Shown one piece after another: positions 5,430 to 6,846 of a stretch of 64,000 nt of DNA; the first letter of the stretch is position 1, and the number at the start of each line of letters is the position of its first letter. Position numbers and translations under genes: made by a program. A model generated the notes under the pieces. The model was not told the DNA's origin, did not search any database, and saw only the letters and a list, made by a program, of their open reading frames with translations. The DNA lies in IMG/VR virus record IMGVR_UViG_3300047548_001236, positions 62,001 to 126,000 of that record; one strand, given 5' to 3'.

Positions 5430-5606
5430 TTATGCAAACCTAAACGATGTATATTGTTCTTTGTTTTCTGTTGACAACCACCAGTAGTCACATGAGCACA
5501 GCTCTCTGGTGCTACCTTGGTCATCTCTTACAACCACTTCGTTACAACCGTCAGGCATGAAAGCAATAGGTTGCCATTCCCAAGGTGCGTAGTAGTCTTT
5601 TTCCAA
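5430..5606 (-). CDS. small hypothetical protein inside tRNA array (58 aa, TTG start)
   Basis: GAGG RBS, then (M)EKDYYAPWEWQPIAFMPDGCNEVVVRDDQG...SFRFA*; fills the spacer between tRNA-Tyr and tRNA-Glu. Confidence 0.5.
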   Translation of the reverse strand: MEKDYYAPWEWQPIAFMPDGCNEVVVRDDQGSTRELCSCDYWWLSTENKEQYTSFRFA

Positions 5607-5623: not shown

Positions 5624-5710
5624 TGGTGGGAGTGGATGGATTTGAACCAACTCACCTTTGCAGGAACAGGGTTACAACCTGCCGCGACTCTCCTACTTCG
5701 CCGCACTCCC
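5624..5710 (-). tRNA. tRNA-Tyr(GTA)
   Basis: GGGAGTG/CACTCCC+ACCA, loop TTGTAAC, long variable arm. Confidence 0.93.
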
Positions 5711-5718
5711 GTATTGTT

Positions 5719-5794
5719 TGGTGGTGCTGGGTGGAATCGAACCACCGACAACCTAGTTATGAGCCAGGCACTCTACCGACTGAGTTACAGCACC
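5719..5794 (-). tRNA. tRNA-Met(CAT) (elongator Met or Ile2)
   Basis: GGTGCTG/CAGCACC+ACCA, loop CTCATAA. Confidence 0.92.
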
Positions 5795-5895
5795 ATTGTT
5801 TAGATGATACGCTGGGTTGCAACTACTTGCGTCAGCTTTGTATCCTTTCGAACGTGCTTCCATCTGACAGAAGCCAGCGTATCATCTAAACAATG
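5794..5895. repeat. 22-bp perfect inverted repeat enclosing a 58-nt structured loop
   Basis: CATTGTTTAGATGATACGCTGG ... CCAGCGTATCATCTAAACAATG. Confidence 0.85.
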
Positions 5896-5898
5896 TTT

Positions 5899-5974
5899 TG
5901 GTGCAGCCCCGCGGGATCGAACCGCGTCCTCTAGCTTTTCAGACTAGCGTACACACCAGTTATACCAGAGCTGC
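5899..5974 (-). tRNA. tRNA-Phe(GAA)
   Basis: GCAGCTC/GGGCTGC+ACCA, loop CTGAAAA. Confidence 0.93.
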
Positions 5975-5979
5975 ATTTT

Positions 5980-6055
5980 TGGTAGATCCGGTGGGACTCG
6001 AACCCACGTACTCCGATTAAAAGTCGGGTGCTAAAACCACCTCAGCTACGGATCT
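5980..6055 (-). tRNA. tRNA-Lys(TTT)
   Basis: AGATCCG/CGGATCT+ACCA, loop CTTTTAA. Confidence 0.92.
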
Positions 6056-6064
6056 ATGTTATTT

Positions 6065-6142
6065 TGGCAGCCCCAACGGGAATCGAACCCGTTTCTCCAG
6101 ATTGAAAGTCTAGTATCCTAACCTACCGTAGACGATGGGGCC
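6065..6142 (-). tRNA. tRNA-Glu(TTC)
   Basis: GGCCCCA/TGGGGCT+GCCA, loop CTTTCAA. Confidence 0.93.
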
Positions 6143-6151
6143 ATTGTGTTT

Positions 6152-6226
6152 TGGTGTGCCGGGAGAATTTCGAAATCTCGACCTTGGGATTAAGAGTCCC
6201 CTACTCTGCCTCTGAGCTACCGGCGC
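6152..6226 (-). tRNA. tRNA-Lys(CTT)
   Basis: GCGCCGG/CCGGCAC+ACCA, loop CTCTTAA. Confidence 0.9.
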
Positions 6227-6241
6227 ATTCTGTTCCTTGGG

Positions 6242-6313
6242 AGACCTATACGGGAGTCAAACCCGTCTAACTAGTTTTGCAGACTAGCACCTAAATCGCT
6301 CGGTCAATAGGTC
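6242..6313 (-). tRNA. tRNA-Cys(GCA), no in-register CCA, extended acceptor stem
   Basis: GACCTAT/ATAGGTC+U73, loop CTGCAAA, T loop TTTGACT. Confidence 0.8.
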
Positions 6314-6334
6314 TCCGAAAGAACAGATATTTTA

Positions 6335-6410
6335 TGGCCCCCAGGGACGGGATCGAACCGCCGACACCATGCTCTTCAGGCACGTGCTCTACCAACTGAG
6401 CTACCTGGGG
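6335..6410 (-). tRNA. tRNA-Phe(GAA)
   Basis: CCCCAGG/CCTGGGG+GCCA, loop CTGAAGA. Confidence 0.92.
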
Positions 6411-6418
6411 ATGTTATA

Positions 6419-6503
6419 TGGTGGGAGGTGCAGGGTTCGAACCTGCCGTAGTTTTCACTGCCGGTTTTACAGACCGGTGCTCGTCCACTCGAGCACACCT
6501 CCC
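6419..6503 (-). tRNA. tRNA-Tyr(GTA)
   Basis: GGGAGGT/ACCTCCC+ACCA, loop CTGTAAA, long variable arm. Confidence 0.92.
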
Positions 6504-6509
6504 AATTTT

Positions 6510-6594: not shown

Positions 6595-6676
6595 TGGAGG
6601 CGTCTGTGAGATTCGAACTCACGCCTTTTGGACCTCGGATTTGCAATCCGGTGCGTTACCACTCCGCCTAGACGCC
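6595..6676 (-). tRNA. tRNA-Cys(GCA) with enlarged variable region
   Basis: GGCGTCT/AGACGCC+TCCA, loop TTGCAAA, 12-nt variable region. Confidence 0.88.
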
Positions 6677-6695
6677 ATTTAGATTATCAAAGAGC

Positions 6696-6731
6696 AAAAG
6701 AAAAACCCTCTAAGATTTCTCCTAGAGGGTT
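6696..6731 (-). terminator. Rho-independent terminator (attenuator) immediately upstream of tRNA array
   Basis: 12-bp stem AACCCTCTAGGA-GAAA-TCTTAGAGGGTT followed by TTTCTTTT. Confidence 0.9.
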
Positions 6732-6780
6732 CTGAGATGAACTGCTATATTTGCATATAGAGTCAGCCTCGGGAACCCTC
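6725..6780 (-). promoter_or_regulatory. antiterminator hairpin mutually exclusive with the terminator
   Basis: GAGGGTTC (6780-6773) pairs with GAACCCTC (6732-6725, terminator 5' arm); inner hairpin CTATAT-GCAA-ATATAG. Confidence 0.8.
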
Positions 6781-6822
6781 CCAAGTCATATATTCCTTAA
6801 ATTTGCAAATAAAGTAGGTCAT
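6763..6822 (-). CDS. attenuator leader peptide MTYFICKFKEYMTWEGSRG
   Basis: AGAGGA SD 5 nt before ATG; codons match array anticodons; 3' end overlaps antiterminator strand. Confidence 0.8.
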   Translation of the reverse strand: MTYFICKFKEYMTWEGSRG

Positions 6823-6846
6823 CTCGTTCCTCTGTTTGTTTTAGTC

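Follow-up and report, generated by a model that had tools for sequence, protein, structure and literature searches.

How a phage decides when to transcribe its tRNA genes is essentially unknown, and such arrays are usually treated as constitutive codon-usage supplements or, more recently, as decoys or replacements against tRNA-cleaving defences. The locus described here raises the question of whether these genes can instead be controlled by the speed at which their own codons are decoded. We analysed a stretch of phage DNA of 64,000 nucleotides (hereafter the window), in which a short ORF with a start signal lies just upstream of a tRNA gene cluster. An earlier note, made from the sequence alone, had proposed that this ORF is the leader peptide of a transcription attenuator which senses the tRNAs encoded downstream, and that it serves as a sensor of tRNA damage. 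We first verified the sequence elements, then asked if the resemblance between leader and array exceeds chance, and finally looked for the same architecture in related loci.

Results

Anatomy of the leader

Every sequence statement of the earlier note was confirmed, and all coordinates below are on the minus strand. A promoter-like site consists of TTGACG (6946-6941), a 17-nt spacer and TAAATA (6923-6918), about 90 nt upstream of the ATG, with a predicted transcript start at about 6912-6910. This site is only consensus-like and fell below the threshold of our promoter scan, however it is supported by better boxes (TTGACA, 17 nt, TATATT or TATAGT) at the same place in relatives. The minimum free energy (MFE) fold places a 5'-terminal stem-loop at 6910-6847 (UGGAUGG paired with CCAUCCA). 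Relatives of one type (represented by locus L004; L numbers denote the related loci described below) have GGATGA/TCATCC, a compensatory change, whereas the stem-loop is absent in relatives of the L040 type, so it is an accessory feature. The Shine-Dalgarno sequence AGAGGA (6833-6828), conserved in relatives of the lineage of the window (lineage A), is located 5 nt before the ATG (6822-6820) of an ORF of 19 sense codons (6822-6763), which encodes MTYFICKFKEYMTWEGSRG and ends with TGA at 6765-6763.

The end of the ORF contains GAGGGTTC at 6780-6773 (codons 15-17, Glu-Gly-Ser), a perfect complement of GAACCCTC at 6732-6725. The latter is the base of the 5' arm of a 14-bp hairpin (6733-6702) with a GAAA loop (6719-6716), which is followed by the U-tract TTTTTCTTTT (6705-6696); this intrinsic terminator has a folding energy of -20.3 kcal/mol alone. 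We call the two complementary strands region 2 (GAGGGUUC in the leader RNA) and region 3 (GAACCCUC), as region 3 can pair either with region 2 to form an antiterminator or with region 4 to form the terminator. Three further helices were predicted. Helix P0 is formed by GAGAUGACC (6825-6817), which includes the start codon, and GUUCAUCUC (6742-6734), directly 5' of region 3; its duplex energy is -11.7 kcal/mol, it is part of the MFE structure of the naked leader, and its strength varies among relatives with partial covariation. A local hairpin at 6785-6768 (CUUGGGA, loop GGGU, UCCCGAG) is mutually exclusive with the antiterminator, and hairpin H at 6760-6745 (CUAUAU, loop GCAA, AUAUAG) is located inside the antiterminator loop. 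A motif of unknown function, GCTCTTTGATAATCTAAA (6695-6678), is found between the terminator and the first tRNA and is conserved across deep lineages.

The first tRNA gene (Cys-GCA) starts at 6676, 19 nt after the T-run. ARAGORN finds 13 tRNA genes at 6676-5262 (Cys, Ile, Tyr, Phe, Cys, Lys-CTT, Glu-TTC, Lys-TTT, Phe, Met/CAT, Tyr, Glu-CTC, Ile), and the array also holds a structured spacer and one small ORF. These genes have 9 anticodon types (GCA, GAT, GTA, GAA, CTT, TTT, TTC, CTC and CAT), each with a cognate codon in the ORF, although GAG, the codon for CTC, lies inside the antiterminator strand, as had been noted earlier. Rfam models identified nothing beyond tRNAs in 7100-5000: no family matches the leader, no T-box was found at E up to 1, and the hits to L10-leader and ctRNA have E of 0.2-0.8 and are chance.

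Codon content of the leader

The match between the leader and the array is well beyond chance. Codons 3-12 (6816-6787; Y F I C K F K E Y M) are all read by tRNA types of the array and form the longest run of array-cognate codons in all six frames of the window, 10 codons, with the next longest being 9. Of 13 regulatory codons 10 are cognate, against a background of 0.28 in the phage's own genes (P = 3.6e-4), and all 7 array amino-acid types are present (simulated P = 5e-5). The ORF is conserved in 11 sequence variants of lineage A, and all 4 nonsynonymous changes seen in codons 3-12 of relatives (Y>F, Y>C, F>Y, K>E) stay within the array set. The earlier note had also pointed to the match with both Lys and both Glu isoacceptors. 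This is true in the window but is not conserved: codon 9 is AAG, AAA or GAG in relatives, without matching gain or loss of Lys-CTT or Glu-CTC tRNAs. The leader's Thr and Trp codons have no tRNA in the window, but a plausible account exists, as ACT-TGG forms the 5' arm of the conserved local hairpin and the sister lineage B (L045/L053) has Trp-CCA and Thr-GGT tRNAs in its array.

Related loci

Exact or near-exact searches for the leader found only the source contig. Searches for a degenerate-codon pattern showed the same leader upstream of the same tRNA set in relatives, and scans for the architecture returned 15, 38, 60 and 5 loci. In sum, about 100 related loci and 49 distinct leaders were found, nearly all 8-520 nt upstream of a phage tRNA array; the exceptions look like chance hits. 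A scan of bacterial genomes gave nine hits, eight of which are chance (real tRNA T-arms followed by a terminator, or GC-rich repeats), while one (L090) is a phage-like contig binned into a MAG. No DNA similarity to cultured phages was detected for the leader of the window or for two large-array leaders, and no isolate in the collection searched carries the element. The DNA polymerase is only 44% identical to T4-like cyanophage polymerases.

In 47 of 49 distinct leaders the antiterminator octamer is read as Glu-Gly (GAG GGT), and in the other two the frame is shifted by one base. In 44 of 49 the stop lies 11-21 nt after the first base of region 2, with a mode of 15, which is also the distance in the window; that places region 2 inside the footprint of a terminating ribosome. 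In two AT-rich lineages the stop lies 27-33 nt after region 2, so simple masking by a terminating ribosome is not enough there and only a steric or timing argument remains. Only 17 of 49 leaders have an SD-like motif, and many begin 6-7 nt after a TATAAT box, that is, as leaderless mRNAs. Several large-array lineages (L070, L081, L116, L163) have a second promoter-like box between the terminator and the array, which would bypass the attenuator.

The amino-acid content of the leader tracks the content of the array. Arrays of 7 types have leaders with 9 types, including all 7 (three loci with complete arrays, 7/7 each), an 8-type array is covered 8/8 and a 13-type array 13/13 with no extras, whereas the 14-type array L046 is covered 10/14. 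Small-array leaders are almost confined to the array set: 26/28 residues (P = 1.5e-8) and 23/23 (P = 2.4e-5). Full 20-type arrays have leaders with 19-20 types in 34-36 residues (P about 2e-4 to 4e-3). Shuffling leaders among the arrays of six lineages equals or exceeds the observed match in 2 of 720 permutations. It should be kept in mind that the loci are phylogenetically related, so the P values overstate independence. Codon-level matches were seen in AT-rich lineages (AGA with Arg-TCT, ACA with Thr-TGT, TTA with Leu-TAA). The pN/pS value of 0.70 obtained for 41-codon leaders is uninformative because homologous positions shift; only the conserved core shows mainly synonymous change.

Covariation and folding of the switch

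A MAFFT alignment misaligned region 3, so the helices were analysed by sequence anchors. The last base of region 2 and the first base of region 3 are C/G in 15 loci, U/A in 60, U/G in 0 and C/A in 5; one of the C/A hits is a chance tRNA T-arm match, and the other four keep the helix by a shifted register or a one-base bulge. Compensatory changes also occur in the local hairpin, namely TGG>TAG together with CCCGAG>CCTGAG in L065/L088/L090, and U-A and U.G swapped in L045. In hairpin H the loop GCAA/GCGA is conserved while the stem sequence changes completely between relatives, and in the terminator the top of the stem covaries while the base is invariant.

Before region 4 is made, the antiterminator is the MFE structure or within 1-5 kcal/mol of it. 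When the window leader was folded with a ribosome masking successive positions, the probability of the antiterminator was 0.00 without a ribosome, 0.98-0.99 with the A-site at codons 2-6, 0.37-0.65 at codons 7-9, 0.99 at codons 10-11, and 0.00 from codon 12 to the stop. All ten lineages that could be modelled show the same switch.

Discussion

Our data support the core claim of the earlier note by independent comparative evidence that could not have been available to it: the locus is best explained as a ribosome-mediated transcription attenuator that gates a phage tRNA array. According to this model, host RNA polymerase starts at an early-type promoter and transcribes a short leader ORF whose codons are those decoded by the tRNAs encoded downstream. 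If these codons are decoded quickly, the ribosome reaches the end of the ORF and covers region 2, region 3 pairs with region 4, and transcription stops 19 nt before the first tRNA. If any of the relevant aminoacyl-tRNAs is scarce, the ribosome lags within codons 2-11 and holds open helix P0 or the local hairpin, region 2 pairs with region 3, the terminator cannot form, and polymerase reads into the tRNA genes. Because the products relieve the stall, the circuit would be a negative-feedback, demand-driven supply of exactly the tRNAs the phage carries. We hold this explanation with good confidence, yet translation of the ORF, termination efficiency, the direction of regulation in vivo and the physiological trigger are inferred in the absence of transcript, ribosome-profiling or reporter data and with the host unknown; the only RNA-labelled runs that hold relatives, from wastewater, appear to be DNA and are kept as contigs, giving no 5' or 3' ends. 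The phage probably transcribes its tRNAs only when decoding of these codons is slow.

One could argue that the attenuator exists mainly to detect sudden loss of host tRNAs cut by anticodon nucleases (PrrC, PARIS AriB, PtuAB or VapC types) and to switch on replacement tRNAs, as the earlier note suggested. This is a special case of the model above and is not exclusive of it. The predicted switch responds to any shortage of the cognate aminoacyl-tRNAs, Lys, Tyr, Glu and Met tRNAs are likely targets of such nucleases, and the neighbourhood encodes tRNA-care enzymes (a CCA-adding enzyme with an HD domain, a TilS-like ATPase and a TROVE-like protein); the neighbouring ORFs 6959-7246 and 7243-7530 have no Pfam match. 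However, leaders of full arrays cover 19-20 amino acids, which fits general supply control better than sensing of particular nuclease targets, no defence or anti-defence gene was linked to the element, and the restricted tRNA set (A/U-rich codons) fits codon-usage compensation equally well. Nothing in our data distinguishes the alarm from simple demand sensing or negative feedback; we regard it as possible but doubtful as the main function.

Other readings are less likely. Translation of the leader could control RNA stability, RNase processing of the tRNA precursor or re-initiation, or the logic could be reversed, so that completed translation promotes read-through: helix P0 sequesters the start codon once its 3' strand is made, the conserved motif between terminator and first tRNA has an unknown role, and the default state of naked-RNA folds differs between lineages. 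Yet a canonical strong terminator with a U-tract is present in every locus (though partly by construction of the search pattern), the stop clusters where a terminating ribosome masks the antiterminator strand and not the terminator, and the covariation of regions 2 and 3 is neutral for the terminator and meaningful only for the antiterminator, so we find this unlikely. It is still less likely that an ordinary terminator of the upstream early genes is accompanied by an incidental or micro-protein ORF. Phage tRNA sets are indeed expected to mirror phage codon usage and the promoter is only consensus-like, but the excess of cognate codons over the phage's own genes and the length of their run speak against it; moreover, peptide sequences are unrelated between lineages except for Glu-Gly, which is imposed by the RNA, and yet composition tracks each array, while the frame and stop are conserved relative to the RNA switch. 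Finally, a T-box-like riboswitch that binds tRNA without translation is a remote possibility. An antiterminator/terminator pair does lie upstream of tRNA-related genes and regions 2 and 3 resemble a split tRNA T-arm, however no T-box or other Rfam match was found, one RNA could not specify 7-20 different tRNAs, and the conserved ORF, its frame and its codon match argue for ribosome sensing.

We found no description of attenuation of phage tRNA arrays in full-text literature searches, which do not cover subscription-only papers. It appears more likely than not that the window holds one member of a widespread, undescribed class of viral regulators, leader-peptide attenuators with codon content tailored to the array they gate, ranging from 7 amino acids to near-complete 20-amino-acid "pangram" leaders. 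This would be the first case of tRNA genes being autoregulated by the speed at which their own codons are decoded, and the same device would also act as an alarm that turns on replacement tRNAs when host defences destroy tRNAs. It would mean that phages measure decoding capacity directly and make tRNAs on demand, it would extend attenuation to tRNA genes and to sensing of many tRNA species by one leader, and it would offer natural, compact sensors of tRNA availability (about 150 nt, with up to 20 amino acids read out by one terminator) for cell-free and synthetic-biology settings.

The tRNA cluster of T4 is likewise transcribed from upstream early or middle promoters and contains small stable RNAs, but the 97 nt upstream of T4 tRNA-Gln hold no leader ORF and no U-tract terminator of this kind. 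The accessory trn operon of Anabaena PCC 7120 is a back-up tRNA array that is off by default and is switched on under translational stress; it is cellular rather than viral and is controlled by a DNA-binding repressor, TrcR, with neither a leader nor attenuation mentioned in its description (PMC10272220). T-box riboswitches couple a terminator/antiterminator decision to tRNA status upstream of translation-related genes, but they bind one uncharged tRNA directly and need no ribosome, while here an ORF is conserved. In the pheM leader of pheST, ribosome-mediated attenuation regulates an aminoacyl-tRNA synthetase operon, a component of the decoding apparatus, in response to the level of charged tRNA; it senses one tRNA species and regulates a protein gene, whereas here many species would be sensed and the tRNA genes themselves would be regulated. 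The leader-peptide attenuators of amino-acid operons (trpL, hisL, pheL, thrL, leuL and especially the multi-amino-acid ilvL/ivbL leaders) share with the present element a promoter-proximal short ORF with regulatory codons, an intrinsic terminator before the first gene, a mutually exclusive antiterminator that overlaps the ORF end, a 1:2-like helix in the anti-antiterminator role, and, as inferred here, an outcome decided by ribosome position. They regulate biosynthetic enzymes through runs of codons for one or three amino acids, whereas the present element is encoded by phages, many of its members appear to be leaderless mRNAs, the sensed molecules would be the products themselves, and the leader carries one to a few codons for each of 7 to 20 amino acids, tailored to the array.

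Architecture of the leader and the tRNA array

The window is part of a 283-kb uncultured viral contig (IMG/VR UViG 3300047548_001236), which carries T4-like replication and baseplate genes and whose DNA polymerase is at most 44% identical to that of any deposited phage; its best DNA holder is a freshwater metagenome. All elements of the site lie on the minus strand. A promoter-like TTGACG-17-TAAATA at 6946-6918 is followed by a 5' stem-loop at 6910-6847, by an AGAGGA SD at 6833-6828 and by an ORF of 19 sense codons, which runs from the ATG at 6822 to the TGA at 6765-6763 and encodes MTYFICKFKEYMTWEGSRG. A small GCAA-looped hairpin (hairpin H) lies at 6760-6745 and a 14-bp GAAA-looped terminator at 6733-6702, with a U-tract to 6696. 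After 19 nt, thirteen tRNA genes follow at 6676-5262, which carry nine anticodons and serve Cys, Ile, Tyr, Phe, Lys (two), Glu (two) and Met/CAT. The sequence GAGGGTTC within codons 15-17 (region 2, 6780-6773) is the exact complement of GAACCCTC (region 3, 6732-6725) at the base of the 5' arm of the terminator. The earlier note had claimed a leader ORF that is matched to the tRNA array and whose end can pair with the 5' arm of the terminator, and every statement it made about the sequence is correct.

The array has several further features. The Cys-GCA tRNA (6595-6676) is unusually long at 82 nt, and Lys tRNAs of 86-88 nt occur in relatives (contig L004, 12534-12715); it should be noted that ARAGORN at default thresholds misses several array members (Tyr, Cys, His) that appear at -ps85/90. 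A 104-nt spacer between tRNA-Phe and the CAT tRNA (5795-5898, minus strand) folds into a long, nearly perfect stem with three small arms (-41.8 kcal/mol, z = -6.8). It has no Rfam family, relatives have comparable structured spacers in their arrays (for example L004 12342-12448), and it may be a stable small RNA like T4 species 1 and 2. A 58-residue Cys/Trp-rich ORF (5430-5606, minus strand; L004 about 12900-13090) also sits inside the array and is conserved in relatives (shared core ...TRELCSCDYWWLS...), although it has no Pfam match. A related phage in a wastewater run has a contig that skips 796 nt of the array, from the Tyr tRNA to the Ile tRNA (window 5710-6507). Therefore, the arrays gain and lose blocks of tRNAs between close relatives.

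A cluster of tRNA-care genes lies next to the array at 9132-10592, 11983-12603 and 13771-15024, all on the minus strand: a DUF2828/DUF7788 vWA protein (PHROG 'RNA-binding protein', TROVE-like), a TilS-like PP-loop ATPase and a CCA-adding enzyme with an HD domain. Because of the TilS-like gene nearby, the CAT tRNA may be an Ile2 (lysidine) tRNA that decodes AUA as Ile, rather than Met.

We asked if the match between the leader codons and the array could be due to chance. In the long genes of the phage itself the codons read by the array make up 28% of all codons, while in the leader they are 10 of the 13 codons between the start and region 2 (P = 3.6e-4), and all seven array amino acids are represented (simulated P = 5e-5). 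Additionally, codons 3-12 are the longest run of array-cognate codons in any of the six frames of the 64-kb window (10 codons, the next longest being 9).

Related loci and the leader ORF

A neighboring protein led us to contigs with 77% identical orthologues, whose arrays hold the same amino-acid set and are preceded by the same leader with three base differences, and a degenerate-codon pattern added a third lineage. We then searched for the RNA architecture only, that is region 2, a gap, region 3, a gap and region 4 (the partner of region 3 in the terminator) plus Ts, which gave 15 viral and 38 metagenome loci. About 31 of the 38 metagenome hits, and all the viral hits, sit 8-520 nt upstream of a tRNA array; the remaining seven have no tRNA and look like chance. 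A relative missed by that pattern (L019/L116) carries GAGGGTTT paired with AAACCCTC, and scanning for this variant gave 60 more viral loci, 59 of which lie in front of tRNA arrays. No cultured phage in the collection has any of these leaders, and T4 has nothing comparable.

The ORF is tied to the RNA switch. In 47 of the 49 distinct leaders the octamer of region 2 is read as Glu-Gly within an ATG-initiated ORF of 15-55 codons, and in the other two the frame is shifted by one base, but the ORF still crosses region 2. The peptides are otherwise unrelated between lineages. The stop lies 11-21 nt after the first base of region 2 in 44 of 49 leaders, with a mode of 15, so that with the stop in the A-site a footprint reaching about 12-15 nt upstream of the P-site covers region 2; two lineages, however, have a distal stop codon. 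In one sub-lineage (L065/L088/L090) the Trp codon has become TAG, thus the stop sits directly before region 2, and a matching C-to-T change keeps the local hairpin paired. Only 17 of 49 leaders have an SD-like motif. Many leaders of large arrays (L112, L113, L116, L132 and L163 among the loci) have their ATG 6-7 nt downstream of a TATAAT box, as expected for leaderless mRNAs.

A conserved motif of about 17 nt (GCTCTTTGAYAATYTA and variants such as GTTCTTTTACAATTCAGG) lies between the terminator and the first tRNA in the window (6678-6695, minus strand) and at the same position in the deeply diverged lineages L039, L040, L070, L112, L113 and L132; it could be a processing site, a protein-binding site or a termination modulator. 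Some large-array lineages (L070, L081/L054, L116, L163) have a second promoter-like box (TTGAC-17-TATA) between the terminator of the attenuator and the array, which in L070 is followed by a further 15-codon ORF. In L045, L054 and L080, about 200 nt of conserved sequence with a repeated motif (GATTCTRTTTTCACATRC) separates the terminator from the first tRNA.

Leader composition and array composition

Leader composition follows array composition at loci whose arrays are complete on the contig. The arrays of 7 amino-acid types (the window and two relatives) have leaders with 9 types, including all 7, and the array of 8 types (L105/L130) has a leader with 10 types, including all 8, with 26 of 28 residues within the set (P = 1.5e-8). 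The leader of the 13-type array (L047/L050) contains exactly those 13 types and no other (23/23 residues, P = 2.4e-5). The 14-type array (L046) has a leader with 11 types, 10 of them shared, the 19-type array has one with 18 types, 17 of them shared, and the 20-type arrays have leaders with 19 or 20 types within 34-36 residues (P about 2e-4 to 4e-3). One further locus, L124, does not fit, as it has 19 leader types against 4 array types, but its array is cut short by the 1,500-nt gap rule and continues beyond it.

In the AT-rich lineages the match holds at codon level: AGA with Arg-TCT, ACA with Thr-TGT, TTA with Leu-TAA and GTG/GTA with Val-TAC. When leaders were shuffled among the arrays of six lineages, the observed total Jaccard similarity was equaled or exceeded in 2 of 720 permutations. 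Within the lineage of the window, the four nonsynonymous changes in codons 3-12 (Y>F, Y>C, F>Y, K>E) all stay inside the array set, the chance of which is 0.29 per change. These loci are related and the P values are therefore not independent; nevertheless, the pattern is consistent in every lineage with an informative (small) array.

Predicted RNA switch and covariation

The terminator alone is worth about -16 to -24 kcal/mol across lineages. Before region 4 is transcribed, the helix of regions 2 and 3, which encloses hairpin H, is either the MFE or within 1-5 kcal/mol of it. In the window the naked leader prefers a different fold, in which the start-codon region pairs with the segment just 5' of region 3 (helix P0, -11.7 kcal/mol) and codons 13-18 form a local hairpin; both exclude the antiterminator. 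We masked a 27-nt ribosome footprint codon by codon, and the resulting P(antiterminator) for the window was 0.00 without a ribosome, 0.98-0.99 with the A-site at codons 2-6, 0.37-0.65 at codons 7-9, 0.99 at codons 10-11 and 0.00 from codon 12 to the stop. The other nine lineages that could be modeled show the same switch. Therefore, the zone where a stall favors read-through coincides with the tRNA-matched codons.

There is covariation between regions 2 and 3. The first base of region 3 pairs with a U of the U-tract in the terminator whether it is G or A, and its identity is therefore neutral for termination. It is nonetheless correlated with the last base of region 2: counts in the viral collection are C/G 15 loci, U/A 60, U/G 0 and C/A 5. 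One of the five C/A hits is a chance tRNA T-arm match, while the other four keep a helix of at least 8 bp by a shifted register (GGAGGGUU with AACCCUCC) or a one-base bulge. The stem of hairpin H changes completely between relatives while its GCAA/GCGA loop is kept, and the top of the terminator stem also covaries. A further observation concerns window 6773-6780 with 6725-6732 and the loci L089 and L096: regions 2 and 3 together read like a tRNA T-arm (GAGGG-UUC...GAA-CCCUC) split open by an insertion, and the bacterial chance hits of the search pattern are genuine T-arms followed by a terminator. It could be that the attenuator evolved from a decayed tRNA gene at the head of the array.

Discussion

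Our data imply that the element has every sequence-level hallmark of a ribosome-mediated attenuator and that it gates tRNA genes, although this rests on sequence and folding analysis and not on direct evidence of translation, termination or regulation in the unknown host, the RNA-labelled runs having been uninformative. The most economical function is demand-driven, self-limiting expression, in which the phage tRNAs are transcribed while decoding of their codons is slow and transcription is curtailed once they are abundant. One could argue, as the earlier note proposed, that the leader may be an alarm for attack by anticodon nucleases. Such an alarm would use the same circuit, and we can neither support nor exclude it; however, the all-amino-acid leaders of complete arrays argue that general supply control is at least part of the purpose. 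The second promoter-like box downstream of the terminator in some large-array lineages and the distal stop codon in two lineages have to be kept in mind here. The earlier note was also concerned that the Thr and Trp codons of the leader have no tRNA in the window. These codons are plausibly explained in part by structure, since ACU-UGG forms the 5' arm of the local hairpin, and in part by ancestry: the sister lineage B has Trp-CCA and Thr-GGT in its array, and the leader of the window matches that array better than its own (Jaccard 0.90 against 0.78).

Ribosome-mediated attenuation is in itself a known mechanism, but our full-text literature searches found no report of attenuation control of phage tRNA arrays. 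What appears to be new here is the inferred application of this mechanism to such arrays, and it appears to be widespread in uncultured aquatic T4-like phages. The nearest functional analogue that we found is the stress-inducible trn operon of Anabaena, which is controlled by a repressor (PMC10272220).
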